Assembly: GCA_030390025.1 (NCBI GenBank)
Contig: CM059449.1
Location: forward strand, 15,438,001-15,502,000
Direction of reading: 5' to 3'
From: Squalus acanthias
Lineage: Eukaryota
DNA length: 64,000 nucleotides
This document shows, piece by piece, positions 9,121 to 43,420 of this stretch (the stretch's first letter is position 1; each line of letters begins with the position of its first letter). Below the pieces are notes generated by a model. That model did not search any database, was not told the DNA's origin, and saw only the letters and a list, made by a program, of their open reading frames with translations. The translations under genes and the position numbers were made by a program.

Positions 9121-10504
9121 TGCTTGATTTTCCTGCTGGGGGCATCCAAAAACCAGACTGACAATTCTACCAGTCGGTCTTTATTACAGTGGGAGGTCAG
9201 TGCTGTTTCTGATCTATTAATAGTTTGCAGTCATGTTTTATTCAACACCATGGATTTCCTTGGCATATTCAACAGATTGAATAGGGCCCAAATCAATAAT
9301 ATCTTACGATTAATGGGATGCTATCTGTGATAGTAAGACACGGTGTGCAATCTGTGATCAAGATACTATTTTCTAGCAAGAAGATTGATCATATTATGTT
9401 TTATTAATTAATTGAATCATCATTGAAACTTTTAACAAACTGTTATTTACAGATTTAATGCTTAAACAACTTTGCCAGAGACATCTTTGCAAACACCCCG
9501 AAACAGATTTGATGGATTAGATAGTTTGCAGGAGTCATGTGAAATAGCACAATCTTTACACTTTCCTCTTGTGGAGCTGTTTATACCGAATTCCTCATTG
9601 CAGTCCCTTCCAAATGCAGGTCCCATATTTTATGTTGTTTTCTTCTTCACTGTTGCATATGGTTGAAGTGTATTTTCATTCTGTTTATGTAAAAGTAATA
9701 AAACATATTACAAACTTCACCATGGAACGAAATGAAGGAAAATTTGTGAAAAATCAGAAGATCAACGCATCCATTAAAGTTGAATGAAACACAGCTGGCA
9801 AAATTCTTACCAAACATTAGACATGATTACACAAGTGCTTGGAAGTTAATATAAGGGACCGATTCTCCTATGCACTATGCTGAACGAAATTGTATTTATA
9901 CAGAATCGGTTTACTCTTTTGTTACACATAATGCTCCCCAGGTGTTATGTTATAATTCAAATGCTTAAAGCACTTCTATCAAATTTCTGTGCCTGCTACT
10001 TAAGGGAGGCACAGGACCTTTAGCATAAATGGATTAAAAAATCTCTCTTAGAGAGATTTCATACCGAATGGTTTTAAGTGTTGTTACTTCAATAACGACG
10101 TTCAATTTCTAGGCTTATAACTTAGAAATATAGGTAAGGTTTACATTTTCTCTTTATTAAAGCAAAGGAAAGCATAAAGCCAACTATTAATTCAGAAATC
10201 AGAATCCATCCGGAGCAGCACGTGATCTTTTCTGGTCACCCAATCACAGGACAAATATTATTGCCTTTGAGAAAGTTAACAGGGGCAAACAAGAAATATG
10301 GAGGGAGGGATTGAAATTTGACATGGGCAGGGACGGAAAACAGGCGGTTTTGCATGGGTCCCGTGTTATACGCTGCGCCCGATATTCAGCGCCATTGACT
10401 TCAATGGAATTGATTATCAGTCGTATGGTATAACGGCCAGCATATGCGATTCCACCTGTTTTGCGACTTCGCCAATGATCAATTTCCACCCCCCCCCCCC
10501 CCAA

Positions 10505-12735
10505 GGTGACCGAGGTCAGAGTTGAGACAGAAAAAGGAGGCTTATGACAAACGTAAGGTTCATAATACAGTCGAGAAGCAAGATGGATACAGGAAGTACA
10601 GAGCAGATCTATAAAAGTGAATAAGAGGGGCAAAGGGAGAGTATGAGAATACATGAGCGGCAACATAAAGGGAAGCCAAAAGTCTATTATAAACATATAA
10701 ATAGTAAAAGGGTAGTCAAAGGAAGGATGGGACCGATTAGGGACCAAAAAGGCAATATTCGTCATCACTATACGATAGGCACCAAGAAATCCAATAGGGG
10801 ATTTAGAAGAAGTTTCTTTACCCAGAGAATGGTGAGAATGTGGAACTCGCTACCACAGGGAGTAGTTGAAGCGAATAGTACAGATGCATTTAAGGGGAGG
10901 CTGGACAAACATGAGGGAGAGGGGAATAGAGGGTTATGCTGATAGATTTAGATGAGGAAAGACGGGAGGAGGCTCGAGTGGATCATAAACACCGGCATGG
11001 ACTGCTTGGGCCGAAAGCCCTGTTTCTGTGCCTATGTAATCCTATGTAATTCTTGCTCCGACAGAGGCATGGCTCAGGTACTAAATGAGTACTTTGCATC
11101 TGTCTTCACTAGAGAAGAGGATGCTGCCAATGTAACTGTAACGGAGGAGGTAGTGGCGATATATTTAGGATACAAATATTTTAAGAGGAGGTAGGCAGTC
11201 CTCAAAGTAGAAAGCTTACCCTGTCCAGATGGGATGCATCTTAGGTTACAGAGGAAAATATGGGCGGAAATTACAGAGGCTTTGGCCACAATCTTCCAAT
11301 CCTCCTTCGAAATGGGGGTGGTGCCAGAGGACTGGAGGATTGCAAATGTTACACCCTTGTTTAAAAAATGGTAGAGGAATAAACCCGGCAACTACTGGCC
11401 AGTCAGCCGAATGTCGGTTGTGGGGAAACTTTGAGAGACAATAATCCGGGACAAAATTTACTGGCATTTGGAAAAGTGTGGGCTCATAAATGAAGGTCAG
11501 CACGGTATTGTTGAAGAAAAATCGTGATTTGCTAACTGGATTGAATTATTTGATGAAGTAATGGAGAGGGTTGATGAGGGTAGTGCGGTTGATGTTGTGT
11601 ATATGGACTTTCAAAGTCGTTTGACAAAGTCTCACATAATAGATTGTAAGCAAAATTAAAGACCATGGGATTAAAGGGACAGTGGCAATGAAATTGGCTT
11701 AAGGACAGCAAGCAGAGGGTAGTGGTGAACGGTGGTTTTTCAGACTGGAGGGAGGTATACAGTGGTGCTCCCCAGCGGTCAGTATTGGGAACCCTGCTTT
11801 TGATATATTTTCATGACCTGAACTTGGGTATACAGGGCATCATTTCAAAGGTTGCAGATGACACAAAACTCGGAAATGAAGTAAAGAATGAGCAGGAAAC
11901 TTCAGGAGGACATAGACAGAGTGGTGAAATGGGCGGACACAAGGCAGATGAAATTTAACGCAGAGAAGCGTGAAGTGATACATTTTGGTAGGAAGGACGA
12001 GGAGAGGCAATATAAACTAAATGATAACATTTTAAAGGGAGTGCAGGAACAGAAAGACCTGGGGTTGTATGTACATAAATCTTTGAAGGTGGCGGAACAA
12101 GTTGAGAAGGGTGTTAACAAGTCTTATGGAATCGTTGGCTTTATTAAAAGAGGCAAAGATTACAAAAGCAAGGAAGTTATGCTGAACCTTTATAAAACAC
12201 TGGTTATGGCTCAGCTAGAGTGTTGTGTTCAATTCTGGGCACCACACTTTAAGAAGGATGTCAAGACCTGAGAGAGGGTGCAGAAGAGATTTACCAGAAT
12301 GGTACCATTGAGTGACTTCAGTTATGTGGACAGACTGGAGAAGCTGGGCTTGTTCTCTTTAGAGCAGAGAATGTCAAGAGAAGATTTGATAAAGGTGTTT
12401 AAGATCATGAAGGGTTTTGATAGAGTAAATAAGGATAAATTGTTTCCAGTGGCAGAAGGGTCGTTAACCAGAGGACACATATTTTAGTTGATTGGCAAAA
12501 GAACCAGAGGTGACATGAGGAAACTCTTTTTTCACCGCAAGTTGTTGTGCTCTGGAATGCACTGTCTGAAATGCAGTAACCTTCAAAAGAGAATTGGATA
12601 AACACTTGAAGGGGAAAAATACAGGACTATGGGGAACGAGCGGGGCAGTGGCACTAATTGGATAGCTCTATCAAAGAGCCGGCACAGGTACAATGGGTCG
12701 AATGGCTTTCTGTGGTGTGTCATTCTATGATTCGG
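10505..12735 (+). mobile_element. Decayed CR1 LINE (ORF2 to 3' end) with a second CR1 3' end inserted at ~10775-11050
   Basis: CR1 ORF2 motifs across several frames. Confidence 0.85.
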
Positions 12736-12839: not shown

Positions 12840-13090
12840 AATACAGGAAATGCTGGAAATACTCAGCAGGTCAGGCAGCATCTGTGGAGAGAGAAACAGA
12901 GTTAACGTTTCAGGTCGATGACCCTTCGTCAGAACTGGAAAAAGCTGCTGGAGATCGAACAGGTTTTTAAATAAGTGCAGAGGCAGGGAAAGAGGGTAGG
13001 GGAGGAAAGAACAAAAGGGAAGGTCTGTGATAGGATGGAAGGCAGGAGAGATTAAGAGAGATTAAGAGATGGTGCAAGGCAAAAGGAGAG
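12840..13090 (-). mobile_element. Penelope-like element terminal repeat fragment with a hammerhead core
   Basis: Dispersed repeat also at ~45-200, 22846-23090, 44790-44985, 45083-45430 and 55128-55430; minus strand CTGACGA..GAAACGTT. Confidence 0.7.
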
Positions 13091-14409
13091 TAGTAGAGTT
13101 CGGCAAGTGTTGGGGAGAGGTGGTTCAACGCCACTGGGTTAGGGATGGAGCTTTAGCTAGATTTCGCGTACACATTGGATCTTCATCGACCATGTAATAG
13201 AAATGGCATGCGGGTGCTGATTACAGGATCGGCTTGTTAAATTCACGGTCGATGTTCACATATGTACAATGGCCACTTGGCCGAGTTACTGGAGGTCGGC
13301 CATCACTCATTGAGCGGTATGCAAATCAGAAGAGTCTTCAGGAAAAGGGAAACAGTTCAGGAACAAACTGAATAATATGTTATCAAGGAAAGTTATAGAG
13401 TTTGGCCATGTTTTTCTTAGGAGGAGAGGAGATTTCAAGAGAATGGCGCTCATGTTTGCGAGATTATGAAGCGGATTGGCCATGCTCGTCCCTTTGCTAG
13501 CGGTGGTCTCACACCTGGTTGCCTCAGTACAATTGTATTCTGACTGACAGCTTGGTCCCCAAGCTCCACTACTGCTGTTACATCCAAGGGTACCGCGAAC
13601 TGTTTTGCTTAGGTGAGACTACCGTACTGTAAGACCACTGTTAAATGCGCTTCCAGAGAGATAGTGGATTTAGCGATTGGATGAGAAGGCTTTTAGCTGG
13701 CTGGGTCCTCAGTTCTGTAATTCCCTCCCTAAGCCTCTCTACCTCGCTATTTCTCCTTTAAGACGCTCCTTAAAGCCCACCTCTGTCCTAATATGTGGCT
13801 TGGTGTCAAATTTTGATGGATAATCGCTCCTTTGAAGCGGTTTGGGACGTTTTACTATATTAAAGGCGCTATATAAATGCAAGTAGTTGTTGTTAGGTTG
13901 GATTTGTCTCACAATAGGGGACAGTGGCTCGGTTTGCCTAATGGACTTCCCTTTTTCCAAAAATGTATCAGCTTTTATAGTGCGTTCAAAAGTAGCGTTT
14001 ATCACTCTGAGGAACTTTTCGTTTTTACCTGACATGGGGGTTTGTGCAGAAACAATAAATACATTCTATGTCTGAATTTCAGTAACTGTTAGTTTACATA
14101 CCACACCGTTAAAATCTACGGAGCCAACCATATCTATAATATCTGAAAACAAAGAGAACATTTGGAAGTGAATAATTGGCTGTGGGGCGTGGTTACATGC
14201 CGGTTCTAGGAAGCAACCTTTCAGGAAATCGAAAATATGGCTCGGGACGAAGAGTAAAATTATCGCACAAAATTTAATGGCAGCATGAAAACATTCACTG
14301 TGCATAATGTTTATAGCCACAAGCATGTAGACTGGTTACACAGGAAATCCGACCGTTAATATAGCGAACAGGAAAAGTACCTTATTTTTTCATTCGAAAG
14401 GAGACATAA

Positions 14410-15690
14410 AAACCTGAGAAGATAAGAAATAGGAACAGGAGTGGGCCATTTGGACCTTCGAGCCTGCTCCGCCATTCAATAAGATCATGGCTGATCTTCT
14501 ACCGCATCTCCACTTTCCTGCACTATCCCCATATCCTTTGATTCCCTTAATATTCAAAAATCTATCGATCTCTGCCTTGAATATACTCAACGACTGAGCC
14601 TCCACAGCCCTCTGGGGTAGAGAATTCCAAAGATTCACCACCCTCTGAGTGAAGAAATTTCTCCTCAACTCAGTATTAAATGGCTGACCCCTTATTCTGA
14701 GACTGTGACCACTGGTTCTAGACTCCCCAGCCAGGGGAAACATCCTCCCTGCATCTACCCTGTCAAGCCCCGTAAGAATTTGTATGTTTCGATGAGATCA
14801 CCTCTCATTCTTCTCAACTCTAGAAAATATAGGCCTAGTCTACTCAATCTGTCCTCATAGGGCAATCCCCCCATCCCAGGGACCAGTCTGGTGAACCTTC
14901 GTTGCACTCCCTCTATGGCGAGTATATCCTTGAGTATTGCGTGCAGTTTTGGTCGCCTTATCTGAGGAAGGATGTTCTTGCCGTGGAGGGAGTGCAGCGA
15001 GGATTCACCAGACTGATACCTGGGATGGCAGGAATGACATATGAAGAGAGATTGGGACGATTGGGCTTTTATTCTCGAGAGTTTAGAAGAATGAGAGGGG
15101 ATCTCATTGAAACTTATAAAATTCTAAAAGGGCTAGACAGACTAGATGCAGGAAGGATGTTCCCGATGGCGGGGGAGTCCAGAACCAGGGGTCAGAGTCG
15201 AAGGATAAGGGGTAATCCATTTTGGACTGAGATGAGGAGGAATTTCTTCACCCAGAGAGTGGTGAACCTCTGGAATTCTCTACCACAGAAGGCAGTTGAG
15301 GCCAATTCATTAAATATATTCAGGAAGGAGTTAGATATATTTCTTAAGGCTAAAGGGATCAAGGGATATGGGGAGAAAGCAGGGACAGGGTACTGAATTT
15401 GGATGATCAGCCATGATCGCATTGAATGGCGGAGCAGGCTCGAGGGGCCGAATGGCCTACTCCTGCTCCTATCTTCTATGTTTCTATGTCTATGTTTCTA
15501 TCCTTCCTTAGGTAAGGAGACCAAAACTGTACATAATACTCCAGGTGTGGTCTCACCAGGGCCCAATATAATTGCTGTAAGACGTCTTTACTCTTGTACT
15601 CAAATCCTCTTGTAATAAAGGCCAACCTACCATTTGCTTTCCCAATTGCTTGCTGGACCTGCTAGTTAACTTTCAGTGATTCTCATACCA
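14410..15690. mobile_element. Minus-strand CR1 interrupted by a plus-strand CR1 (14932-15498)
   Basis: Host sequence resumes after the insert; duplicated TATCCTT at 14925-14931 and 15499-15505. Confidence 0.85.
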
Positions 15691-15891
15691 GAGACGGTAC
15701 AAGAATAGAAGTACACTGTAATATATGCGAGTTTTTTTCACATTAATTATAAATATAGGGTTATTGTTACTTATATTAAGGGAATGGCCTTTATCGCGGT
15801 TTAATGCTAGCCGGAGTAATGAATGTCGCATAAATGAAAGGCTAATATAGACAATAGTAGCTTGTAAGTAAGACACTGTAACAATCCTTAC

Positions 15892-18800
15892 CATGCGGGG
15901 GGATGTCGGCATAGACCTCTTCATCACTGAACCACAAAGGGAGGAAGAAGCAAATCGTTACATGTTTAAAACATGCAGTACGTGTCACATGAAAATAAAG
16001 GCAGCAAAATGTCACAGTGATATCTACGCACCATTGCAAAGGTGGAGCGAATTCTGTGGAAAGACAAAGAACAAACAAAGAATATCTGTTATATCTGAGA
16101 ACGTATTTAGCACAACTGCATTCTTAACTACGTCTCGGTTTTTATCATTTGTCAATAATAATTAATAAATGTTTATCTACGGGCAGTGGGAGTGGGAAGG
16201 GTGCACTGCAGTCGGCTCCCATTTCATGGTGCGAGCCAGTCTCATTGCAACGCTAACTGCCGGGTGAGGGTGCCCTTTATCCCTGTCTAGAAGGGCAATG
16301 TGTAAAGATAGTTTAGGACATCCAGCATCTAGCGGGCGTGGTTGACCTGAATATAATGAAGCATTAAACGGATGATGTGTAGCTGCCCCAACAAATCAAA
16401 AGCGCTGTCATACTGATCCAATAAAAGGTATGCTTTAGAGATTTTGGCTAAAGTATAGCGTTAGTACGGTGCTGTACCTGAATGGCACTCCAGCAGTGCT
16501 CGCTGCTGATACGGTGGGTAATTTTAACCTAAGGCCGGGCGGGATCGGGCGGAAGTCCGGTTTTACATATTACCCTCCACTGACTTCACTGGAGAGTAAA
16601 ATCGAGCTGTGTGTAATGCTGGCGTTGCACCCGGTCTCTTCCATTTCCCGACGTCCGTGTTCGGTTAAAATTTCCCCGTGTCCAACAACACAAGGTGAAC
16701 AATATTACATCTCCAACAAGCGAGAATCTAACCACCGCCCCTTGACGTTCAATGGCATTACCAGCGCCGAATCCCCCACCATCAACATCCTGGGGGTTCA
16801 GCATTGACAAGAAACTTAACTGGACCAGCTATATAAATACTGTGGCTACAAGAGCAGGTCAGAGGTTGGGTATTCTGTGACGAGTATCTCATCGCCTGAC
16901 TCCCCAAAGCCTTTCCACTATCTGTAAGGCACAAGTCAGGAGTGTGATGGAATACTCTCCACTTGCCTGGATGAGTGCAGCCCCAGCAACACTCAAGAAG
17001 CTCGACACCATCCAAGACAAATTAGCCTGCTTGATTGGCACCCCATCCCCATCTTAAACATTCACTCCCTCCACCACTGGCGTACCGTGGCTGCAGTGTG
17101 CACCATCTACAAGATGCACTGCAGCAACTCGCCAAGGATTCTTCGGCAACACTTCCCAAACCCGTGACCTTTTCCACCTAGAAGGACAAGGGCAACCGGC
17201 GCATGGGAACACCATCACCTGCAAGTTCCCCTCCAAGTCACACACCATCCTGACTTGGAAATATAACGCCGTTCCTTCATCGTCACTGGGTCAAAATCCA
17301 GGAACTCCCTTCCTAAAGCACTGTGGGAGTAACATTCATGACACGGACTGCAGCGGTTCAAGAAGGCGGCTCGCCACCACCTTCTCAAGGGCAATTAGGG
17401 ATGGGCAATAAATGCTGGCTTTGCCATGTACGCCCACATCCCAATAACAAATATTTTAAAATATTAGCAAAAGGCAAGCTACTGAGTTTATTCCTTGGCA
17501 ATTCGCACAAGTATAATACCGAAGCCTCGTTGAATCTTGTTAAATGATTCTTTAATCGGTGGTGCTCACCATCCACGTTAGGTTCATCATAGATCGGCTC
17601 ATTCCTTCGGGACAACAAACAAAGAAGAGGAAATGAGTGTTACTGCAGAGTTACAGAGCAATTAGCATAAAAGATGTAGGAAACGTTAACTCTGAGATTT
17701 ACCGACCTTCCCATTGGTGGAGGAACATCTGCAAAAGTAAAAGTTCACCATGAAAGCTTTGTAACGTTAATGCAATCCGTCTGAAAACAGTTCGACTACA
17801 AGAAACTGTTTCCACTGGTGGGAGGGTCGGTAACCAGAGGACACAGATTTAAGATAATTGGCAAAAGTGCGAGAGGGGAGTTAAGGAGAATTTTTTATGC
17901 AGTGAGTTGTTATGGTACGGGAAACACTACCTGAAAGGATGGTGGAAGCAGATCCCCCGCCCCCAAGATGTTTTCTCCCTATCGCCCCTTTCCCCCAGGC
18001 TCCCGCCCCGATGTTCTCTCCCTTCTCCCCTGATGCTCCGGTTCCGATATTCTCTCCCTGTCCCCCCGTCCGCATCCCCCCCACCCCCACCCAATGCTCC
18101 TGCCCCGATCTTCTCTCCCTCACCTCCCCGATGCTCCGGCCCCGATGCTTCCCTCCCTCCCTCCTGCCCAATCTTCCTCCGGCCCCCGACAACCCAACCT
18201 CACCTCCGGCCCGCACCTGATTCCCTCCCACCTCACAGCTCCCAACCAGCCTTTCCGCCCTGCACCCAACCAGGCTCCGGATTAAAATTCCGGCCATGGT
18301 AGCACCCAATCACCAGCCCGAGTCAGACCAGTTAGTTCGGCATATCTCACGGATCCAACCATGGGATCTCTCTGGCACTGGTGACTCAGGAGTACACCTG
18401 GCAGTGCATCTAGATTTTGAAGCAACCGGTCCATTGAGGAGCAGGTTAACTGCTCTGCAGGTGCGTCACTCACCAGCTGGATTAATTTCATCATAGGCGG
18501 AACCAGCGATGTCCATCCAGGGTCTGGGAAAGAGAAAAACAAACAATCACATAGCTGAAACAAAAATCCAGCTGATTAAAAAAATGCTTCACCCTCATAA
18601 CCACCAACCAACCTTTGTGCTTGCGGAGCTAACTCTGTGGGAATAAAAGTCGAAAATTAAGGTCTATCCTTTGATGCAAACAAGACATTTGATACTTTGA
18701 AATGAGATTCAAATTATATGTGCCTCTTATGTCCATCCAGCAATAATAATCAGCGAAACTACTGAAGTCCTTTACCAACAATAATTGCTAATTTAAAAAA

Positions 18801-21800
18801 AATTGTTTAAAGGACTATTTAAAAAATCGACCAGTTAAATACATATAACTAATACTTACCATTAGAAAGAATGTTACTGCAAGGCGCAATATTGCTTTGG
18901 GATCAAAACGGAAAAGGGAAAAAGATGTCAGTGGATTGAATATCTAAATGCACATCAATTAAATAGAGATATAAAGAGAAGAGTGATCAGCACTTCAATA
19001 TTCACTGACCGTTGTAACCGTGCAGGTTCGAGACCTGCGGGAATAAAAGGTGATGGAGAAAGTGTTACAACTTTACTACGGGCGGACGGTAGCATCGTGG
19101 TTATAAGAACATAAGAAATAGGAGCAGGAGTAGGCCATTCGGCCCTTCAAGCCTGCTCCGCCATTCAGTAAGATCATGGCTGATCTTCTCCCTCATCTCC
19201 ATCTCCCAGCACTATCCACATATCCCTTGATTCCCTTAGAATCCAAAAATCTATCGATCTCTGTCTTGAATATACTCAATGACTGAGCCTCCACAGCCCT
19301 CTGGGGTAGAGAATTCCAAGATTCACCACCCTCTGAGTGAAGAAATTTCTCCTCACCGCAGGCCTAAATGGCTGACCCCTTATTCTGAGACTGTAACCCT
19401 TAGCTCTAGACTCGCCAGCCAGGGGGAAACATCCCTCAGCATCGACCCTGTTATGTTACTAGACTAGTAATCCAGAGGCCTGGGCTAATGATCCGAATAC
19501 ATGGGCTCAAATCCCAGCACTGGCAGCTGGGGAATTTAAATTCAAATAATTAAATAAATCTGGAATAAAAAGCTATTATCAGTAATGGTGATCATGAAAC
19601 TACCGGATTGTCATAAAAATCCATCTGGTTCACTAATGTCTGGCCTATATGAGCCATAGCAATGTGGTTGACTCTGAAATGGCCTAGCAAGCCACCACCA
19701 AGGTGGCTCACCACCACCTCCTCGAGGGCAATTAGGGATGGGCAATGAATGAATAAAAAATAAATAAACTTTCCTTATTTGAAAGAACAGCATCCCCAAC
19801 CACAATCCGGTCAAGATCAGCTGACGGTTTCAACTGAACGAGACCAGTATCGTTTATGTAATAAACCGACTCAATCCCTAACCATCTGAAAATGTCTGGT
19901 ATTAAATATAATCATTTAATATCATTTTCTGTGCCTGAACTACAAGCAGCCCACGAATGTAAAAATAAGAGCCTAAAAATTGCCATTAATAACTTTTACT
20001 GAGGGACACCTGCCGCATTATGGAACGTGGAATAGTTCGGATTATACTTTAACAATGTAAATTGAACAATTTGTTCATCCATTAGTAATGCGGAAAGATA
20101 AATATCACACTAACCCACCAAAGGTACATTTCCCACTGGCATTTCATAGCCTATTCAAGCAAAACGTGTTCAGAGTGGTAAAACCGAGCGATTTGAACGA
20201 GTCACTTACGATCTAAAGGGATGCCTTCATAAAATCGATTATTCATTCTAAATCTCAAAGAAAAAAGGCGCATTATCGAACAGTACACACATGTTATATA
20301 CGTCAATTTTGGAAAAAAGTTTTTTGTGGGTAGGGGAGATTTACCAACCTCTGAAATTGTAGGCGGCGAACTGTAGAAATGAAAAGTAACAATAAAAGTA
20401 ACAATTTGAATATAAACATTACTAAAAAGAACCAAGATTAACTGGCCATTATCACATTGTTGTTTGTGGGATCTTGCTGTGCGCAAATTGGCTACCGCGT
20501 TTCCTGCATCACAACAGTGACTACACTTCAAAAAAGCACTTCATTGACTGTAAAGCGTTCTGAGGGCGTGAAAGGCGCTGTGTGAATGCAAGACTTTCTT
20601 TACAACAACATCAAAGGCGAACCAAATGTCACTGGCGTTTGAATGCATGCATCTACTTTATGGTTATATTCGGAAGCGCAATATTGCTCTTTCAAATAGT
20701 TACCTTTTGTCAGACCATAACCTGCGGAGAACAGGAGGAAAGCGACTAAAACTCCGGCAGCGGTGTACAACAAGCTGTTGCTTAGCGACGATTGGCTGGT
20801 TGGCTCTGTGGTCGGTTGTACTGGGAGCCGGCCGAGACAGAAGACAAAATAAGAGATTAGTTTCACCCAGAACATCACTTACTGACTCCCGCTCTCCACT
20901 GCTGGTGAATGTACAGCGTGCCCCGACACCAGCCAATAGGTAATGCTATTTCAATGGGTGATGAGAACTACAGGTGCAGCGGTGCTGATTTTTTCCATCT
21001 CCCCCCCATTTGCTAATTGGGCTTGTGATATTTGTTATTTATATTTTTGACTTTAACAGCTAATGTTTTTTTTCAAATTGATACAAAGTCAATTGTTATC
21101 GAAAATATATCGTGACAAAACACTTAACGATTATAATCTCGTCATTGAATTATCTGTTCTCAATATTCTATGGAAGAGGGGTTGGTTGTGTATGTACAGA
21201 GGAACCTGGGTATCCTTGTACACAAGTCACTGAAAGCAAACATGCAGGTGCAGCAAGCAGTTAGGAAGGCAAATGGTATATTGGCCTTCATTGCATGAGG
21301 ATTTGAGTACATGAGCAAGGATGTCTTACTCCAGTTATACAGGGCACTGGTGAGACCACACCTGGAGTACTGTGTGCAGTTTTGATCTCCTTACCTAAGA
21401 AAGGATATACTTGCCATAGAGGGAGTGCAGCGAAGGTTCACCAGACTGATTCCTTGGATGGCAGGACTGTCGTATGAGCAGAGATTGGGTCGACTAGGCC
21501 TGTATTCACTAGAGTTTAGAAGAATGAGAGGGGAGCTCATTGAAACGTATAAAATTCTGACAGGGCTAGACAGACTGGATGCAGGGAGGATGTTTCCCCT
21601 TGCTGGGGGGTCTAGAACGAGGGGTCACAGTCTCAGGATACGGGGTAGCACAATTAGGACTGAGACGAGGAGAAATTTCTTCACTCAGAGGGTGGTGAAC
21701 CTGTGGAATTCTCTACCACAGAAGGCTGTGGAGGCCAAGTCACTGAATATATTTAAGAAGTAGATAGATTTCTAGACACAAAAGCCATCTAGGGGTATGG

Positions 21801-24800
21801 GGAGAGAGCGGCAATATGGTATTGAGATAGAGGATCAGCCATAATCATATTGAATGGCGGAGTAGGCTCAAAGGGCCGAGTGTCCTACTCGTGCTCCTAT
21901 TTTTCTAAGTTTCTATGTTTCTATGTGTCAGAGTGTATGCACATGTGTTAAGGTAGGCGTGTTAGAGAGACAGAGAGAGAGCTGGGAGGTGAGAGAGAGA
22001 GCGAGAGAGAGAGAGAGAGACGAGCGGTAGAACATGGTACAAGTTATGATGGCGAGGTAGCGAGATCAGAGTTGCTTTTTCTTTTCTTTACGCTGGACAA
22101 TATATTTAATTTGAAAGGTCTACCTCTATCTTGTCCTGCACTTCATACACTNNNNNNNNNNNNNNNNNNNNNNNNNNNNNNNNNNNNNNNNNNNNNNNNN
22201 NNNNNNNNNNNNNNNNNNNNNNNNNNNNNNNNNNNNNNNNNNNNNNNNNNNNNNNNNNNNNNNNNNNNNNNNNNNNNNNNNNNNNNNNNNNNNNNNNNNN
22301 NNNNNNNNNNNNNNNNNNNNNNNNNNNNNNNNNNNNNNNNNNNNNNNNNNNNNNNNNNNNNNNNNNNNNNNNNNNNNNNNNNNNNNNNNNNNNNNNNNNN
22401 NNNNNNNNNNNNNNNNNNNNNNNNNNNNNNNNNNNNNNNNNNNNNNNNNNNNNNNNNNNNNNNNNNNNNNNNNNNNNNNNNNNNNNNNNNNNNNNNNNNN
22501 NNNNNNNNNNNNNNNNNNNNNNNNNNNNNNNNNNNNNNNNNNNNNNNNNNNNNNNNNNNNNNNNNNNNNNNNNNNNNNNNNNNNNNNNNNNNNNNNNNNN
22601 NNNNNNNNNNNNNNNNNNNNNNNNNNNNNNNNNNNNNNNNNNNNNNNNNNNNNNNNNNNNNNNNNTGTTTGTGTGTGTTTGTTTGTGTGTGTATTTGTGT
22701 GTGTGTTTGTTTGTTTGTCTGTGTGTGTTTATGTGTGTGGAAACTATCATAACTCCTTAATAAACGTTTTGGTGATCAAATGGGAATAGTTATTAAACAC
22801 ACAGGGGGAATGTTTATAGCCCATGCATCCAGACATAGAAATAGAAATAAAAACAGAAAACGCTGGAAATACTCAGCAGACTAGGCAGCCTCTGTGGAGA
22901 GAGAAACAGAGTTAACGTTTCAGGTCGGTGACCTTTCCTCAGAACTGGAAAAAGTTAGAGATGGAACAGATTTTAAGCAAGTGCAGGGGCAGGGAAAGGG
23001 AGGTGGGGAGGAAAGAACAAAAGTGACGGTCTGTGATAGGGTGGAAGGTCGGAGAAATTAAATGACAAAAGGGATGTTAGTACAAAGCAAAAGTCATAGA
23101 AATAGAATGTTATGCAAATTTTCACTACATTAATCTATTTTCTTTACATGTAAGACCCTCCGTGCTCAGTCCGCCGTTATATAGTAAGGGACCGGCCGAG
23201 CCAGGGATTATCGTGGAACAGTCCGTTAGTAATAATCAGCCAACTCACGCACTACGTCAAGCTTTGTTCCTGGTCCACTTTTTTCCGCCGATCCCAATAG
23301 TTGCACTTTGCAGTAGTAGAGCCCGGAATCGTAATGTCTCACGTCTTTTATAGTAATGGAAGCGTCCCTCCTTTGTGTGAAATCCTCGGCACTTGCCCGC
23401 GATAGCCGTCCGCTGAATTCCCTGCTTTGGGTGGTGACTTCAGGTCCGTCGACAGAGTTTTTGTGCCACTTGATCACAGCGACCCCCCCCGGGGGCCCTT
23501 CATACGTGCAGTTCAGGAGCACCGACTGCCCCTCCGTGGCGTTAATGACGGACGGGACTTGAATTACTGTAATGCTCTCTGCAGCAATTCCTGCTAGGGG
23601 ATGGTTTCTGATTAGCGAGATGCACCAAGTCTTTATTTCACCTTAACCAAACGCTGAAGATGCTGGAGGCCGCTAGTGAAGAACAGACAGGGACCGTGCC
23701 TCTCCAGACAGCCAGCGGTGGAGGGCCATTGTAAATGTAGCAAAGCTCATCCTGTTGGGTGTAATTTTCCCAGACCCCTGCCACAGTTGGGGCCCGAGGA
23801 GCAGCGGAGGGATTATTGGAACACCACGGGTGCACAGACGGACAGACATTTCCCATCAATTAACTTTAGCCGTTTTCCCATAATCTGTCCCGCTGCAGGG
23901 CTGGTGGCGCGGGGCCTCGGAAAATTGAATGGTTTGGCTACAGCCTGGAAGGAGGCCATTCGGCCCGTCGAGCCCGTGCCGGCTCTCTCTGCAAGAGCTC
24001 TTCAGCTAGTCCCACTACCCCGCCCTTTCCCCTGCGATTTTTTCCCCCTTCAAGTACTTATCCAACTCTCCTTTGAAAGCCGAGATTGAATCTGCCTCCA
24101 CCACCCTCTCAGGCAGTGCATTCCAGATCCTAACAACTCGCTGCATAAAAAAGTTTTCCCTTATGTCGCCTTTGGTTCTTCTTCCAATCACCTTAAATCT
24201 GTGTCCTCTGGTTTGCGACCCTTCCGCCAATGGGAACAGTTTCTCTCTATCTACTCTGTCCAGACCCCTCATGATTTTGAACAGCTCTATCAAATCTCCT
24301 CTCAACCTTCTCTGCTCTAAGGAGAACAATCCCAGCTTCTCCAGTCTATCCACATAACTGAAACCCTCATCCCTAGAATCATTCTCGGATTTATTTTCTG
24401 CACCCCCTCCAAAGTGCGATGCCCAGAATTGGACACAGTACTCCAGTTGAGGCAGAACCAGTGTTTTATAAAGACTCATCATAAATTCCTGGCTTTTGTA
24501 CTCTATGCCTCTATTTATGAAAATGAGAAGTCGCACAACACCAGGTTATAGTCCAACAGATTTAATTAAAATTACAAGCTTTCGAAGCTGTCGCCCCTTC
24601 CTCAAGTAAAGTTACAATCTCATTTTTGTCCACCCCAGTCCAACGCCGGCATCTCCGCATCATGACCCCTATTTATGAAGGCCAGGATCCCGTTTGCATT
24701 TCCCCCCCTCACCCCCCTCATGTCGCCTCTGGTTCTTAATCACCTTAAAACTGTGTGCTCTGTTTCTCGAACCTTCCGCCAGCGGGAACAGTTTCTCTCT

Positions 24801-25944
24801 ATCTACTCTTTCCAGACCACTCAATTCCACCCATTGGGGTAGATTTCCGTCTTTACCGCCTGGGCGCTACACGTCTTGTGACGGAAGGAGAAAGGAAAAT
24901 CCTGAGTGAGATTCCCACTCTTCTCATAGAACCCAGCGGATTTCCTTCCAGTGGATTGAATGGGAAGAAAGTCGGGCAAGTGCTGTTAGCGCCAGATTGT
25001 CCTTCCTGCGTTCCGCCCAGGCCATGCCTAAAGCCCACGTGGTAAAGGCAAAGATGTACACCTTAATCACAGCAAGCATGATTGAGCTCTCTCTCAGTAT
25101 CGCAATCAGATAACGAAAGAAAATCATTCATTTTTAAAAAAATATCGCACATTCATGGCCAATTCGTTAACATCCTCGCCTCTGCGTCAAGCTTATGGGT
25201 TGGAGCCTCACTCGAGCATTCCATCATATCATTCTGGCTCATACCCCAGTGCAGCGCTGCATGCTGCAGTTACGGTTCTGTCGATCAGGCATAAAGTTGA
25301 ACATAAGAAGATAAGAAATAGGAGCAGGGATAGGACATCGGCCTTTCGAGCCTGCTCCGCCATTCAATAAGATAATGGCTGATCTTCTACCTCATCTGCA
25401 CTTTCCCACACTATCCCCTTATCCCTTGATGCCCTTCATATTCAAAAATCTATTCATCTGTCTTGAATATACTCAACGACTGAGCCTCCACAGCCCTCTG
25501 GGGTAGAGAATTCCAAAGATTCACCACCCTCTGAGTGAAGATATTTCTCCACATCTCAGTCCTAAATGGCCAACCCCTTATTCTGAAACTGTGACCCCTG
25601 GTTCTAGACTCCCCAGCCAGGGGAAACATCCTCCCTGCATCTACCCTGTCAAGGCCCCTCTCTGTCTGTTCAGTTGATTCAAGTGGCCGTTAAAATTTTC
25701 ATGTTACTAATCTAAGAAGTCCTGGCCAACTGTCCTTTCCAATTAACATCAGCGCCTCGTTTCTGTTCGATCCCTAGCGCCTTGGTTTTCAACTAAGCCC
25801 CGCCACTGTTTGCTTTGTATGCGAGGCGCTATGATATCGTTCCGAGCGAGCGTTGAAGGCGCTGAATTCTCTGACTGAAGTATGGTACAGTCGGTACTTA
25901 CCAGAGACAAGGGTCAGTGCCCACATAACGCATCGGGAATCCAT
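15892..25944 (-). CDS. NCR3: Gene A: NKp30/NCR3-like single V-set Ig receptor with a long Tyr-rich tail (13 well-supported coding exons; possible further exons at 14102-14142 and 9630-9680)
   Basis: Phase-compatible GT-AG exons: leader 25902-25944, V 23249-23590, TM 20704-20820, then microexons 20349-20370, 20210-20247, 19010-19034, 18860-18894, 18613-18634, 18474-18523, 17707-17728, 17570-17604, 16032-16053, 15892-15926, giving one open frame. The symbol denotes family resemblance, not proven orthology. Confidence 0.8.
16690..17450 (+). mobile_element. LINE 3' fragment of a second (L2/Crack/Daphne-like) family
   Basis: MEYSPLAWMSAA..LKKLDTIQ-type C-terminus; other copies at 31940-32610(+), 40465-41015(-), 61215-61755(-), 44020-44340(-) and 54235-54520(-). 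Clade assignment is tentative. Confidence 0.75.
17952..18280. repeat. C-rich low-complexity tract
   Basis: Runs of C3-C7 with degenerate ccccgatgctcc units. Confidence 0.8.
20704..20820 (-). CDS. Gene A stalk and TM exon
   Basis: 117 nt, phase 1-1, cccag acceptor and gtaact donor; QPTTEPTSQSSLSNSLLYTAAGVLVAFLLFSAGYGLTK, with no charged residue in the hydrophobic core. Confidence 0.85.
21190..21925 (+). mobile_element. CR1 LINE 3' fragment
   Basis: QRRFTRLIP..NFFTQRVVNLWNSLP and a (tttctatg)n tail. Confidence 0.88.
21962..22022 (+). repeat. (GA)n microsatellite
   Basis: Directly visible. Confidence 0.9.
22152..22665. other. Assembly gap (N run) followed by a TG-rich microsatellite 22666-22740
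   Basis: N run. Confidence 1.
23249..23590 (-). CDS. Gene A V-set Ig exon
   Basis: 342 nt, phase 1-1; LNC..KW..GPEV...EFSGRL...DASITIKDVRHYDSGLYYCKVQLLG...GPGTKLDV resembles human NKp30 (GKEV..PEFRGRL..AELHIRDVRGHDASIYVCRVEVLGLG..GNGTRLVV). Confidence 0.93.
23945..24800 (-). mobile_element. CR1 LINE 3' fragments
   Basis: FINRGIEYKS..LEYCVQFW. Confidence 0.8.
25300..25655 (-). mobile_element. CR1 LINE 3' end
   Basis: Near-identical to 14410-14770 and 27250-27600. Confidence 0.85.
25902..25944 (-). CDS. Gene A signal-peptide exon (MDSRCVMWALTLVS-G)
   Basis: ATG at 25944, 43 nt, phase-1 donor G|gtaagt; same length and WA motif as the gene C leader. Confidence 0.8.
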
Positions 25945-33249: not shown

Positions 33250-35235
33250 ATAGGCTCCAGAAAAAGCAGCAAATCTGAGGATTGGGAGCAGTTTAGGATT
33301 CAGCAAACGAGGACAAAGGGATTAATTAAGAGGGGGAAAATAGAATATGAGAGTAAGCTTTCAGGGAACATAAAAACTGACTGTAAAAGCTTCTATAGAT
33401 ATGTGAAGAGAAAAAGATGGGTGAAGTCAAGCGCAGGACCCTTGCAGTCAGAATCAGGGGAATTTATAATGGAGAACAAAGAAATTGCAGACCAATTAAA
33501 TACATACTTTGGTTATGCCTTCACAAAAGAGGACACAAATAAACTCCCAGAGATGTCGGGGAACATAGGGTCTAATGAGAGGGAGGAATTGAATGAAATC
33601 AGTATTTGTAGGAAAATGGTGTTAGGGAAATTAACGGGATCGAAGGCCGATAAATCCCCAGGGCCTGATAATCTACATCCTAGGGTACTTAAGGAAGTGG
33701 CCCTAGAAATAGTAGATGCATTGCTGGTCATCTTTCAAAATTCTATAGACTCTGGAACAGTTCCAATGGATTGGAGGGTAGCTAATGTAACCCCACTATT
33801 TAAAAAAGGTGGTAGAGAAAAAACGGGGAATTTTCGACCGGTAAGCCTGACATCGGTAGTGGGCAAAATGCTAGAGTCCATTATAAAAGATGTAATAGCA
33901 GAGCACTTGGAAAACAGTGACAGGATCGGACAAAGTCAACATGGATTTACAATAGGTAAATCATGCCTGACTAATCTACTGGAATTTTTTGAAGGATGTA
34001 ACTGGTAGAATAGATAAGGGAGAACCAGTGGATGTGGTGTATTTGGACTTTCAGAAGGCTTTCGATAAGGTCCCGCATAAGAGATTAGCGTGCAAAGTTA
34101 AAGGACATCGGATTGGGGGTAAGGTACTGATTTGGATAGAGAACTGGTTGGCAGACAGGAAGCAAAGAGTTGGAATAAACGGGTCTTTTTCCGAGTGTCA
34201 GGCAGTGACTAGTGGGGTACCGCAGGGATCAGTGCTAGGACCCCAGCTATTCACAATATATATTAATGATCTAGACGAGGGAACTAGATGTAATATCTCT
34301 AAGTTTGCAGACGACACAAAGCTGGGTGGGCGTGTGTGCTGTGAGGAGGATGCAGAGAAACTCCAGTATGAATTGGACAGGTTGGGTAATTGGGCAGGTG
34401 CATGGCAGATGCAGTATAATGTGGATAAATGCGAGGTTATCCACTTTGGTGGCTAAAACAGGGAGACAGATTATTATCTGTACGGCAATAGATTGGGAAA
34501 AGGGGAAGTGCAACGAGATCTGGGAGTCCTTGTGCACCAGTCGCTGAAAGTAAGCATGCAGGTGCAGCAGGCGGTTAAGAAAGCAAATGGTATGTTGGCC
34601 TTCATAGCGAGAGGATTCGAGTACAGGAGCAAGGATGTCTGGCTGCAGTTGTACAAGGCCTTGGTGAGACCACACCTTGAGTATTGTGTGCAGTTTTGGT
34701 CGCCTTATCTGAGGAAGGATGTTCTTGCCATGGAGGGAGTGCAGCGAAGATTTACCAGGCTGATACCTGGGATGGCAGGAATGACGTATGATGAGAGATT
34801 GGGTCGATTAGGCTTATATTCGCTAGAGTTTAGAAGAATGAGAGTGGATCTCATTGAAACTTATAAAATTCTAACATGACTAGACAGACCAGATGCAGGA
34901 AGGATGTTCCCGATGGCGGGGGAGTCCAGAACCAGAGGTCACAGTCTAAGGATAAGGGGTAAGCCATTTAGGACTGAGATGAGGAGGAATTTCTTCACCC
35001 AGAGAGTGGTGAACCTGTGGAATTCTCTACCACAGAATGCAGGTGAGGCCAATTCATTAAATATATTCAAGAAGGAGATATATTTATTTCTTAAGCCTAA
35101 AGGGATCAAGGGATTTTGAGGGAAAGCAGGGACAGGGTACTGAATTTGGATGATCAGCCATGATCTCATTAAATGGCGGAGCAGGCTCGAGGGGCCGAAT
35201 GGCCTACTCCAGCTCCTATCTTCTATGCTTCTATG
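33250..35235 (+). mobile_element. 5'-truncated CR1 LINE, ~2 kb of ORF2 and 3' UTR
   Basis: KSPGPD..HPRVLKE, YLDFQKAFDKV, GVPQGSVLGP, KFADD; few stops. Confidence 0.93.
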
Positions 35236-37924: not shown

Positions 37925-38086
37925 NNNNNNNNNNNNNNNNNNNNNNNNNNNNNNNNNNNNNNNNNNNNNNNNNNNNNNNNNNNNNNNNNNNNNNNNNNNN
38001 NNNNNNNNNNNNNNNNNNNNNNNNNNNNNNNNNNNNNNNNNNNNNNNNNNNNNNNNNNNNNNNNNNNNNNNNNNNNNNNNNNNNNN
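37925..38086. other. Assembly gap (N run) inside the Harbinger element
   Basis: N run. Confidence 1.
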
Positions 38087-42249: not shown

Positions 42250-43025
42250 TCGTGGCAGATGAAATTTAACGCAGGAAAGTGCGAGGTGTTACATTGAGGG
42301 AGGAAGGACGAGGAGAGGCAAAATAAACTAAAAGGTACGATCCTAAAGTGGGTGCCTGAACAGAGAGACTTGGGGGTATATGTGCACAAATAGTTGAAGG
42401 TTGAGAAACTGGTTAACAAAGCATATGGGATCCTGGGGTTTATAAATAGAGGCATAGAATACAAAATCAAGTTAGTTATGATAAACTTTTATAAAACACT
42501 GGTTCGGCCTCAAATGGAGTATTGTGTCAAATTCTGGGCACCGCATTTTAGGAAGGATGTGAAGGCCTTAGAGAGGATGCAGAAAAGATTTACAAGAATT
42601 GTTCCAGGGATGAGGAACTTCAGTTATGTGAATAGACTGGAGAATCCGGGGTTATTATCCTTAGAGCAGAGAAGATTGACAGGAGTTTTGATAGAGGTGT
42701 TCAAAATCATGAGGGGTCTGGACAGAGTCATTGGCGGAAGGTTCCAGAACAGAGGACACAGATTTAAGGTGACTGGCAAAAGAACCAAAGGCGACGCAGT
42801 GAGTGGTTAGGACCTGGAATGCACTGCCTGAAAGAATGGCGGAGGCAGACTCAATCGTAGTTTTCAAAAGGGAATTGGATAAGTACCTTTGGGAAAAAAA
42901 ATGCAGGGTTAAGCGGAAAGGGCGGGGGAGTGGGACGAGCGGAAGTGCACTTGCAGAGAGCCGGCACTGTCTCGACGGGCCGGATGGCCTCCTTCTGTGC
43001 TCTAACGATTCTATGATTCTATGCT
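42250..43025 (+). mobile_element. CR1 fragment in gene B intron 1 (equivalent copy 62975-63785 in gene D)
   Basis: Same position and boundaries in both duplicates. Confidence 0.85.
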
Positions 43026-43082: not shown

Positions 43083-43420
43083 ACAATGGGTTGATGAGTG
43101 AGATCAGAGTGTTCCAGTCCCCAGATGCCATTAATGTAACAGAAGGAGGATCGGTGCAGCTGAACTGCACTTTTGACGCGAATGGTTCTGTTGGACATGT
43201 TGCTTGGAGGCGGGCCTCACAAAACATGGAAGTGTCGGTTCGGAATCCTTTCTATCAGAGCCGGATAACGAAGTCAGGGACGAAATTATTTGCCAAAAAA
43301 TGGTTTTCCTTGAAATCATCAATTTAATGACAATGGACTCGGATTTTTACTACTGCGAGGTGGAAATTGCGGCGGATGGGAAAGCAAGCGGGAGAGGAAC
43401 ACAACTTATAATAACTGACA
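43083..43420 (+). pseudogene. Gene B V-set Ig exon (frameshifted)
   Basis: VFQSPDAINVTEGGSVQLNC..VAW..FAKK / MVFLEIINLMTMDSDFYYCEVEI..GRGTQLII split over two frames; ctag acceptor, gtgagt donor. Confidence 0.9.

Follow-up and report, generated by a model that had tools for sequence, protein, structure and literature searches.

The window analysed here, a 64,000-nt stretch of Squalus acanthias DNA, carries on its minus strand gene A, with 15 coding exons running from about 25944 to 9630, together with a paralogue, gene C, and all V exons in it are NKp30-like. The features discussed below are as follows.

25902-25944, minus strand: exon 1 (43 nt; donor gtaagt), ATG and signal peptide MDSRCVMWALTLVS, running into a split codon
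23249-23590, minus strand: exon 2, 342 nt encoding the IgV (VJ-type) domain (phase 1 to 1; borders read)
22152-22665, no strand: run of N in the V-TM intron, left unaltered
20704-20820, minus strand: exon 3, stalk and TM segment LLYTAAGVLVAFLLFSAGYGL (117 nt; phase 1 to 1)
20349-20370, minus strand: cassette 1, a exon, RRLQFQ (22 nt; horn shark RGLQCQ)
20210-20247, minus strand: cassette 1, b exon, MNNRFYEGIPLD (38 nt; horn shark SNDWIYDDIPLA)
19010-19034, minus strand: cassette 2, a exon, LEPARLQ (25 nt; horn shark PEPVGLQ)
18860-18894, minus strand: cassette 2, b exon, NIAPCSNILSN (35 nt; Cys at the Tyr position of the other copies)
18613-18634, minus strand: cassette 3, a exon, LAPQAQ (22 nt; horn shark EAPQRQ)
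18474-18523, minus strand: cassette 3, b exon, PWMDIAGSAYDEINPA (50 nt; includes SAYDEI)
17707-17728, minus strand: cassette 4, a exon, VPPPMG (22 nt; horn shark VPPPLE)
17570-17604, minus strand: cassette 4, b exon, NEPIYDEPNVD (35 nt; horn shark NETIYHDINQD)
16032-16053, minus strand: cassette 5, a exon, FAPPLQ (22 nt; horn shark FPPPFQ)
15892-15926, minus strand: cassette 5, b exon, DEEVYADIPPH (35 nt; horn shark DEEVHSDIPPN)
14102-14142, minus strand: exon 14, IIDMVGSVDFNGV (41 nt; phase 1 to 0; donor gtatgt)
9630-9680, minus strand: probable last coding exon, NENTLQPYATVKKKTT followed by TAA (AG acceptor in phase 0)
52729-52750, minus strand: gene C, single a exon (22 nt; length and phase as in the a exons of gene A)
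52582-52616, minus strand: gene C, single b exon, PDPLYSVIHET (35 nt; Tyr six codons before the donor)

The exon lengths of gene A from ATG to TAA (43+342+117+306+41+51) sum to 900 nt and close the frame, with AG/GT borders and a single reading frame without a stop across 15 of 15 exons, and none of the split codons, checked by eye, forms a stop. Translated searches (tblastn) with horn shark proteins place the parts outside the cassettes: exon 1 is identical at 10 of 15 positions to residues 1-15 of protein P0155, exon 3 matches its residues 130-178 (E 1.6e-07), and the gap between the V and TM exons, which holds the run of N, needs no additional exon to account for the horn shark protein. Exon 14 was placed by horn shark residues 276-296 and its borders were then read, while the exon at 9630-9680 is identical at 12 of 18 positions to residues 295-312 of isoform X4 (P0156; E 0.031) and shares its stop position; both sequences are unique in the window. 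The stretch named in the preliminary description stops at 15892, and these two exons extend the tail further 3', giving a tail of 12 exons, 395 coding nt and about 135 residues with five tyrosines. The microexons themselves each occur once and do not overlap the dispersed repeats.

The ectodomain was examined by Pfam and PDB searches, which identify exon 2 as a V-set domain (E 5.6e-09) and rank four NCR3 chains on top (E 7.7e-15 to 1.4e-14), followed by SIRP alpha as the next family (E 1.7e-07). Together with the J-like motif GPGTKLDVV, these matches bear out the NKp30-type ectodomain proposed earlier, with NCR3 as its best solved relative, and the single VJ-type IgV domain is likewise the arrangement of mammalian NKp30. 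The TM segment, as read from exon 3, contains no Arg and no other charged residue. In the accessible part of PMC6514059, by contrast, mammalian NKp30 is described as pairing through a TM Arg with CD3 zeta or FcR gamma and as having a tail without signalling capacity. Relative to that account gene A differs in both respects: its TM is uncharged, and it has a long tail of its own with multiple tyrosines.

Between the TM exon and exon 14 lie the ten microexons, which were found on the minus strand with AG/GT borders and with the sizes, phases and whole-codon peptides previously assigned to them. Each is preceded by a pyrimidine-rich tract and AG and followed by GT; the a exons run from phase 1 to 2 and the b exons from phase 2 to 1, and the introns within cassettes 1 to 5 measure 101, 115, 89, 102 and 105 nt. 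In five of five b exons the reported six codons, plus a single base, separate the Tyr or, in cassette 2, the Cys from the donor. The architecture by itself is not beyond chance, since a lenient scan of the window (AG, 19-28 nt, GT, 70-140 nt intron, AG, 29-56 nt, GT, with an open frame) returned 913 plus-strand and 910 minus-strand pairs, of which 12 and 32, respectively, had a Tyr at the seventh-last codon. What is beyond chance is the closed frame between ATG and stop, the likeness among cassettes and the one-to-one match to horn shark. The likeness was measured by anchoring the copies at their exon ends and comparing them with within-peptide shuffles: the observed score was reached by 17 of 5000 shuffles for the a exon peptides and by 0 of 5000 for the b exon peptides (63 of 5000 once the Tyr column was removed), and by 0 of 5000 for each of the two horn shark sets. 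At the DNA level, the anchored exons of the window gave 0 of 3000 for a and 0 of 3000 for b, and the flanking intron sequence 5' of the a exons reached a score of 137 against 95.7 +/- 6.5. The peptide and exon-DNA likeness above shuffles thus upholds the view that the five cassettes are copies of one module, and the array probably arose through serial duplication in the genome, predating the split of this species from the horn shark.

Orthology supports the cassettes as coding exons. In the horn shark, Heterodontus francisci, NCBI models XP_067865360 to XP_067865369, named natural cytotoxicity triggering receptor 3-like (X1-X8) or SIRP-beta-2-like, follow the exon order of gene A (leader, V, TM, five cassettes, acidic exon), and all nine isoforms carry the five cassettes in order and one-to-one with those described here. 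The expectation that automated annotation would probably miss such a tail accordingly fails for the horn shark. The five-cassette tail is real and conserved and is already present in public gene models, so it is not unprecedented; for gene A itself, we regard the cassettes as very probably real coding exons. Across the tail exons 66 of 107 residues are identical (62%), a level of conservation near that of the V domain (65.5% identity with P0155 over 119 aligned positions). Isoform X4 ends in YSTVKKKTT, like the C-terminus of gene A, and in seven of the nine isoforms the final exon has its look-alike in the window inside a dispersed repeat, with a stop.

Conservation of the individual tyrosines is partial. 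The Tyr is kept in cassettes 1, 3 and 4, and the Cys in cassette 2, whereas cassette 5 has a His at this position in the horn shark. In cassette 1 the Ile at +3 is kept as well, YDEINPA of cassette 3 is the same in both species (the motif in horn shark being SNYDEI), and the C-terminal Tyr is retained as YATV in gene A and YSTV in horn shark. The stretch NIAPCSN of cassette 2 is identical at seven of seven positions (tblastn) and is the most conserved of the tail. At shorter distance, a close relative was compared through its DNA contigs (run X8): the four indels listed within cassettes 1 and 4 are all intronic, and among the differences listed for cassette 5 its splice sites and Tyr codon are unchanged. 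Five substitutions fall in the 57 exon bases of this cassette, four of them changing a residue, against four in its 105-nt intron, so that cassette 5 shows no sign of extra constraint at the short distance of this run.

Further members of the family place gene A in its genomic setting. Gene C has a V domain of the NKp30-like kind, a TM that lacks charged residues and one two-exon module directly after the TM exon, and it is matched by horn shark XP_067865393-96 (V domain 70% identity) and by horn shark P0016, which makes it a neighbouring paralogue common to both sharks; all horn shark matches to genes A and C lie on one 74.5 Mb record. Tyr-module tails are found in the cluster paralogues generally (gene C; horn shark P0016 and P0104; white shark P0161; nurse shark P0027), the last of these being the nurse shark NCR3 QTT61898.1, the tail of which resembles the single module by eye. 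Compared with five modules in gene A, these paralogues have one. Most of them carry a classical pair of ITIMs at the tail end, a feature that gene A does not have; in P0016 the pair is VQYATL and VLYATV, and P0161 has two copies of VQYCTL. By eye, relatives differ in whether the single module has Tyr, Asn or Cys at the Tyr position. Gene A is therefore assigned to a shark NKp30-like (NCR3-like) gene cluster, and the explanation as a whole, covering its identity, the five-copy module and signalling through its own tail, appears likely.

The tail motifs were compared with published consensus sequences. With the ITIM consensus given in the available portion of PMC4810170 (S/I/V/L-x-Y-x-x-I/V/L), cassette 3 is the sole fit in both species (SAYDEI in gene A, SNYDEI in horn shark); the other four tail tyrosines fall outside it, C-terminal YATV included, and by eye YATV also lies outside the Csk consensus stated there. 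Gene A shows two features of ITIM-bearing inhibitory IgSF receptors of the SIRP alpha, PECAM-1 and LITR type, at least one ITIM-consensus motif in the tail and an uncharged TM. The Nck-type YDEP noted earlier is present in cassette 4 of this species but is not conserved, the horn shark having YHDI, whereas the YDEI of cassette 3 is. By exon lengths, 15 residues separate the YDEI of cassette 3 from the Tyr of cassette 4 in the window, and 15 again separate the motifs of cassettes 4 and 5; the ITAM pattern (Y..[LI], 6-12 residues, Y..[LI]) was looked for in the horn shark tails and does not occur there.

We know of no evidence that the tail exons of PECAM-1 (CD31) are tandem copies of one module. 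As described in the available text of PMC2132561, the cytoplasmic domain of this IgSF receptor is encoded by short exons 9-16, with tyrosines in 9 and 12-15, and its Tyr-bearing exon 14 spans 19 residues, to which the 19 codons of each of cassettes 4 and 5 may be compared. Within that description the likeness to gene A is one of exon layout, a tail of short exons; the PECAM-1 tail exons undergo alternative splicing, but in the nine horn shark isoforms (NCBI models) no cassette is skipped. A second comparison is offered by channel catfish IpLITR 1.1b, an IgSF immunoregulatory receptor for which the accessible part of PMC4810170 describes six tail tyrosines, a membrane-proximal tail without classical motifs but with HIYDEV (a proposed Nck site) and AVYAQV (a Csk site), and a distal tail with ITIMs and an ITSM. 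On this account its layout is similar to that of gene A, where acidic YDE motifs are followed by a C-terminal YATV, although its ectodomain belongs to another family; the gene A motifs fall, by eye, outside the Csk consensus of that paper, and the Nck-type fit is seen in this species only.

These observations suggest a receptor whose predicted product opens with a signal peptide and a single VJ-type IgV domain, followed by a stalk and uncharged TM and then the cytoplasmic tail. Such a receptor would work without ITAM adaptors and signal through its own tail. Ligand binding would lead Src-family kinases to phosphorylate the conserved tyrosines, namely those of cassette 1 (YEGI/YDDI), cassette 3 (S-x-YDEI), cassette 4 and the C-terminal YATV/YSTV, and the resulting phosphotyrosines would then dock SH2 proteins. 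Phosphotyrosine docking is considered a moderately probable function of the tail. Analogy to SIRP alpha, PECAM-1 and catfish IpLITR 1.1b would favour a regulatory, mainly inhibitory role over an activating one, and a net inhibitory sign is put forward here as a tentative suggestion.

The exons could also be genuinely coding while the tail acts mainly independently of phosphotyrosine, with Yxx-hydrophobic motifs serving as AP-2-type sorting or endocytosis signals and the acidic, proline-rich and Cys stretches binding other partners. YEGI, YDEI, YADI and YATV all match Yxx[ILVMF], the key residue is Tyr, Cys, His or Asn depending on copy and species, and the best-kept stretch is the Cys cassette, which is a poor fit to a purely phosphotyrosine reading. 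We nevertheless consider this account unlikely, for three cassette tyrosines and the C-terminal one are kept even though the V domains are just 65.5% identical, the full ITIM consensus is retained in cassette 3, and the family stands among phosphotyrosine-signalling receptors because its cluster paralogues end in classical ITIM pairs. Within phosphotyrosine signalling, the tail might instead be activating, its acidic Tyr motifs (DEEVYADI, or the pair formed by cassettes 3 and 4) acting as a hemITAM or stretched ITAM that recruits Syk-family kinases. An acidic run does precede the cassette 5 Tyr, and the two together presumably resemble the hemITAM of C-type lectin receptors. Binding of Syk to tandem ITIMs has also been proposed for IpLITR 1.1b and PECAM-1, as stated in the available portion of PMC4810170. 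Against this stand the absence of the ITAM pattern from the horn shark tail, the 15-residue spacing of the motifs in the window and the replacement of the cassette 5 Tyr by His in the horn shark, and an activating tail thus seems a poor prospect.

Least probable of all, and in our view very improbable, is that the microexons are unused here, as relics or parts of a decaying gene, with the protein ending soon after the TM. A catshark model (P0002) does stop shortly after a gene-A-like TM; three runs marked "RNA?" cover repeats alone and no gene A exon, with none of the ten listed runs recorded as RNA; a search of the protein collection at 152-483 aa and at 76-241 aa found no protein of this gene; and cassette 5 lacks extra constraint relative to the close relative. 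All of this would fit disuse. Coding use of the cassettes is favoured, however, by the intact borders and stop-free frame of all 15 exons, by a tail about as conserved towards the horn shark as the V domain, and by the confinement of the close relative's listed indels to introns.

The exon structure of gene A, the NKp30-like (NCR3-like) receptor gene, was examined by reading 13000-21500 and locating the peptides in the three minus-strand frames, and the ten tail microexons claimed in the preliminary description were found at the places, sizes and phases it had assigned to them. They pair into five cassettes, each of an a exon and a b exon, and the gene as a whole reads as follows:

25902-25944, minus strand, leader exon, 43 nt
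23249-23590, minus strand, V exon, 342 nt
20704-20820, minus strand, TM exon, 117 nt
20349-20370 (1a) and 20210-20247 (1b), minus strand, cassette 1, 22+38 nt, inner intron 101 nt
19010-19034 (2a) and 18860-18894 (2b), minus strand, cassette 2, 25+35 nt, inner intron 115 nt
18613-18634 (3a) and 18474-18523 (3b), minus strand, cassette 3, 22+50 nt, inner intron 89 nt
17707-17728 (4a) and 17570-17604 (4b), minus strand, cassette 4, 22+35 nt, inner intron 102 nt
16032-16053 (5a) and 15892-15926 (5b), minus strand, cassette 5, 22+35 nt, inner intron 105 nt
14102-14142, minus strand, acidic exon after cassette 5, 41 nt
9630-9680, minus strand, last exon, 48 nt plus TAA

All ten microexon acceptors show a pyrimidine-rich tract with AG at its end and all donors are GT (gtaagt, gtgagt or gtaagg at the b exons; gttggt, gtcagt, gtcggt or gtgcgt at the a exons). 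In every b exon six codons, as had been proposed, and one further base separate the Tyr (Cys in 2b) from the exon end. The microexons total 306 nt, the exon lengths of the gene add up to 900 nt (300 codons) and the frame closes, with no stop among the 13 split codons when these were read by eye. A run of N (22152-22665) lies inside the intron that separates the V exon from the TM exon, and a second run occupies 37925-38086.

The strongest argument that these microexons code for protein is that tail and V domain show much the same degree of conservation between the window and the horn shark (Heterodontus francisci). Searching the V-exon ORF against 1.84 billion representatives returned 349 proteins at E <= 0.001 and seven at E <= 1e-30, the closest single-V match being a horn shark protein of 276 aa at 65% identity (P0007, XP_067865368.1, titled 'signal-regulatory protein beta-2-like isoform X8'); its cluster mates and the cluster of a second horn shark protein (P0153) belong to a single gene as its isoforms X1-X8, most of them titled 'natural cytotoxicity triggering receptor 3-like'. 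Exon-by-exon mapping of the horn shark proteins on the window with tblastn gave 10/15 identical residues in the leader, 65.5% identity over 119 positions in the V domain and an E of 1.6e-07 for the TM exon; NIAPCSN, YDEINPA, DVPPP and DEEV..DIPP are tail stretches common to both species, and the acidic exon at 14102-14142 was matched as well. Counted exon by exon, 66 of 107 tail positions are identical. Moreover, an alignment of nine horn shark proteins places all five cassettes in 9/9 isoforms, with cassette skipping in none of the nine, and the block R173-N276 is invariant except for two single-residue gaps of the NAGNAG kind; a 43-residue stalk/TM block is absent from three of the nine (X5, X7 and X8). 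NCBI is not known to issue several isoforms of a gene where transcripts do not support them.

At the C-terminus, seven of the nine isoforms end in ...LKYFLSVMPGTEHNIPAQPQQMFYKG, isoform X4 ends in DKPNEKILELYSTVKKKTT, and isoform X6 stops directly after cassette 5. The last exon of X4 was matched by tblastn to 9633-9686 of the window (12/18 identical, E 0.031) with the same stop position. The X1-type last exon was considered as the conserved gene end and rejected: its look-alike in the window, 12186-12248 with a stop, lies in a dispersed repeat, and the last exon of the seven isoforms is probably derived from a mobile element. The repeat, in which the look-alike of the horn shark ending ...SVMPGTEHNIPAQPQQMFYKG carries its stop in frame, falls within 12000-12500 and has five further matches (63036-63520, 42311-42781, 24184-24521, 17803-17866 and 34619-34767).

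Tail motifs of gene A in the window and in the horn shark
Cassette 1: FYEGI in the window, IYDDI in the horn shark; Tyr and Ile at +3 kept
Cassette 2: NIAPCSN in both; Cys kept, 7/7 identical, the best conserved tail stretch
Cassette 3: SAYDEINPA in the window, SNYDEINPA in the horn shark; the ITIM consensus fits both species
Cassette 4: IYDEP in the window, TIYHDI in the horn shark; Tyr kept, the horn shark fitting the ITSM pattern
Cassette 5: DEEVYADIPP in the window, DEEVHSDIPP in the horn shark, without Tyr
C-terminus: PYATVKKKTT in the window, LYSTVKKKTT in the horn shark; Tyr kept

The expectation that the Tyr codons would be conserved in an orthologue was borne out for cassettes 1, 3 and 4, with the Cys kept in cassette 2, but not for cassette 5, in which the horn shark has His; the Nck-type YDEP reading of cassette 4 was likewise not kept (YHDI). 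The Cys cassette (18860-18894, minus strand) is not a decayed copy, and it may have a function of its own. No ITAM pattern was found in the horn shark tails, and an ITAM reading was rejected on spacing: calculated from exon lengths, 15 residues lie between one motif and the next in the window.

Ten sequencing runs were listed, none on record as RNA, and four of them (runs X1, X5, X7 and X8, distinct from the isoforms of like number) were aligned to the window. Runs X1, X5 and X7 covered dispersed repeats only (bins 16655-17509, 17681-18022, 19049-19903 and 20417-20587) and no exons; run X8 is DNA of a close relative and covers the unique parts about 17-fold. In the list of differences for this run, cassette 5 shows five substitutions in 57 exon bases (four residue-changing and one silent by our own reading) and four in its 105-nt intron, its Tyr codon and splice sites being unchanged (contigs over 15800-16567), and four single-contig indels in cassettes 1 and 4 are all intronic. 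This pattern fits a fast-evolving or weakly constrained cassette 5, and run X8 says little on the other cassettes.

A lenient scan of the window for exon pairs returned 913 plus-strand and 910 minus-strand pairs, and because about 900 such pairs turn up per strand, the architecture alone was discarded as proof that the cassettes are real. Tyr at the seventh-last codon occurred in 12 plus-strand and 32 minus-strand rows; five of the latter represent gene A's four Tyr cassettes (cassette 1 twice, through an alternative acceptor) and one is the cassette of gene C, a neighbouring NKp30-like gene. The gene A tail goes beyond chance on three lines, namely the closed frame, the homologous copies and the orthologue. 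When each cassette with 40-nt flanks was compared with the window by blastn, nothing but the five self hits was returned, the duplication being too old for a plain DNA search, so that anchored comparisons were required. Peptides were aligned at exon ends and scored against within-peptide shuffles, and the observed score was reached by 17 of 5000 shuffles for the window a-exon peptides, by 0/5000 for the b-exon peptides and by 63/5000 for the latter with the Tyr column removed; the corresponding counts for the horn shark were 0/5000 (register corrected), 0/5000 and 2/5000. Anchored DNA gave 103 identities in the a exons (shuffled, 55.9 +/- 6.4), 158 in the b exons (87.7 +/- 8.0) and 137 in the 26 bases of intron preceding the a acceptors (95.7 +/- 6.5), each reached by 0 of 3000 shuffles, with the caveat that pyrimidine tracts have a positional composition which within-sequence shuffling fails to preserve. 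The b-exon flanks showed no excess likeness (402/3000 and 2134/3000 shuffles reached the observed score), and the donor flanks of 1a (gttggtaaatctc) and 4a (gtcggtaaatctc) are alike at 12 of 13 positions. By these anchored peptide and DNA tests the cassettes are homologous, which upholds the proposed serial duplication of one two-exon module.

The NKp30-type ectodomain suggested for gene A was also confirmed, its best solved relatives being four NCR3 chains (E 7.7e-15 to 1.4e-14), followed by SIRP alpha as the next solved family (E 1.7e-07), and its Pfam assignment is V-set. The available part of PMC6514059 describes mammalian NKp30 as wholly dependent on ITAM adaptors, with an Arg in the TM that serves pairing with CD3 zeta or FcR gamma, and with a tail that lacks signalling capacity; the gene A TM, in contrast, has no charged residues, and its tail is long. 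On these grounds gene A is classed here as a member of the shark NKp30-like cluster and not as NKp30 in the mammalian functional sense. NKp30 is cited, in the accessible text of PMC10751288, as an old, MHC-linked, non-rearranging receptor gene of VJ type.

Further NKp30-like V exons in the window are the following:

about 43094-43416, plus strand, V exon of gene B
54647-54988, minus strand, V exon of gene C
63833-63988, plus strand, fourth V exon, close to that of gene B and cut by the window end

The gene B exon matches NKp30-like proteins in two pieces (43094-43300 and 43309-43416), and their lying in different reading frames suggests a frameshift, that is, a possible pseudogene or assembly error. 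Gene C has one copy of the module directly after its TM exon (22 nt, a 112-nt intron, 35 nt), with a b exon reading PDPLYSVIHET in which Tyr is followed by six codons to the donor. The tail of nurse shark NCR3 (QTT61898.1, P0027), ...MSNPLYADMHDRGE, reads like a single module, and by eye the key position is Asn in the horn shark gene C orthologue (P0016) and Cys in a catshark model (P0002). Given these copies in gene C, nurse shark, horn shark and catshark, the module is old and its key residue variable; it is single-copy in the paralogues examined and five-fold in gene A. Since the last 32 residues of P0016 match 49394-49498 (minus strand; 66% identity, E 2.6e-09), gene C probably ends there, and this stretch reads ...LQYATLNLQ...AVLYASVK, two ITIM-type motifs. 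In the catshark model (Scyliorhinus canicula LOC119975537) a gene-C-like receptor is joined to a V domain and TM of gene A type. There is an Arg in the gene-A-like TM (LYTSARILGVF), and 17 residues past it the model stops, with no cassette at all; either this is an activating counterpart or the microexons were missed in the model.

The gene A product is a type I membrane protein: its V domain is of NKp30 type, its TM is uncharged and followed by basic residues, and its tail is made of five homologous modules and a conserved YxTV end. The conserved tyrosines of cassettes 1, 3 and 4 and of the C-terminus would be phosphorylated to give a signal, and the phosphotyrosines would serve in SH2 docking. 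Because cassette 3 retains an ITIM consensus and classical ITIM pairs close the tails of the paralogues, we lean, on sequence grounds, towards a regulatory or inhibitory role. A tail acting through sorting motifs or other non-phosphotyrosine functions is considered unlikely. A hemITAM-like activating tail appears somewhat less probable again. That the microexons are unused relics is highly improbable for a tail conserved to this degree.

For the reading as a signalling tail, the two nearest functional parallels documented are PECAM-1 and catfish IpLITR 1.1b. In the available text of PMC2132561, exons 9-16 encode the PECAM-1 tail, exons 9 and 12-15 carry tyrosines, and exon 14 is a 19-residue Tyr exon; in that of PMC4810170, the IpLITR 1.1b tail holds six tyrosines, HIYDEV (the proposed Nck site) and AVYAQV (Csk) lying proximally and ITIMs and an ITSM distally. 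IgSF receptors whose multi-tyrosine tails are built from short exons are a well-known kind; new is the five-fold tandem exon-pair module within the NKp30 lineage, a variant of that known kind. The literature searched, to which Flajnik et al. 2012 and Ohta and Flajnik 2015 with their possible accounts of shark or frog NKp30 tails did not belong, contained no description of an NKp30-like shark gene with several tyrosines in its tail, and nothing relevant on ITIM together with exon duplication.

Taken jointly, a tentative and rather doubtful reading is that sharks keep a self-signalling receptor of the NKp30 lineage whose tail is an amplifiable, frame-keeping two-exon module, that its key codon toggles among Tyr, Cys, His and Asn by single-base changes across copies, paralogues and species, that the Cys cassette represents a new non-phosphotyrosine function drawn from a Tyr module, and that mammalian NKp30 is derived. 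On this view, exon-pair duplication and point change would tune how many docking sites there are and of which kind, and mammalian NKp30, adaptor-dependent and tail-less, would be a derived form in a family whose first members were self-contained and for the most part inhibitory. That a shark relative conserves an uncharged TM together with a five-module tyrosine tail of its own would mean that the NKp30 lineage also has self-signalling members. Gene A is a concrete case of the growth of a signalling tail through tandem duplication of an exon pair, and three conserved Tyr, one conserved Cys and the C-terminal YxTV are mutable residues for chimeric-receptor assays.

The prediction that automated annotation would miss the tail fails for the horn shark, where the tail is already in public NCBI models. 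A tail-only search with residues 173-320 of a horn shark protein (P0155) gave two matches among 24 candidates, horn shark only and from no other species, and phmmer and blastp of the tail against 162 fetched proteins returned the nine horn shark isoforms only. The V-exon ORF had no match among 32 candidates at E 1e-10 in proteins of 76-241 aa, and searches of the collection at 152-483 aa and 76-241 aa yielded no protein of the window's gene A. Since no gene A protein was found, the tail-only search reached no other species and the catshark model stops past its TM, annotation may miss the tail elsewhere. Coding exons of 22 nt are recoverable, as in the horn shark, and are apparently also lost, as in the catshark model.
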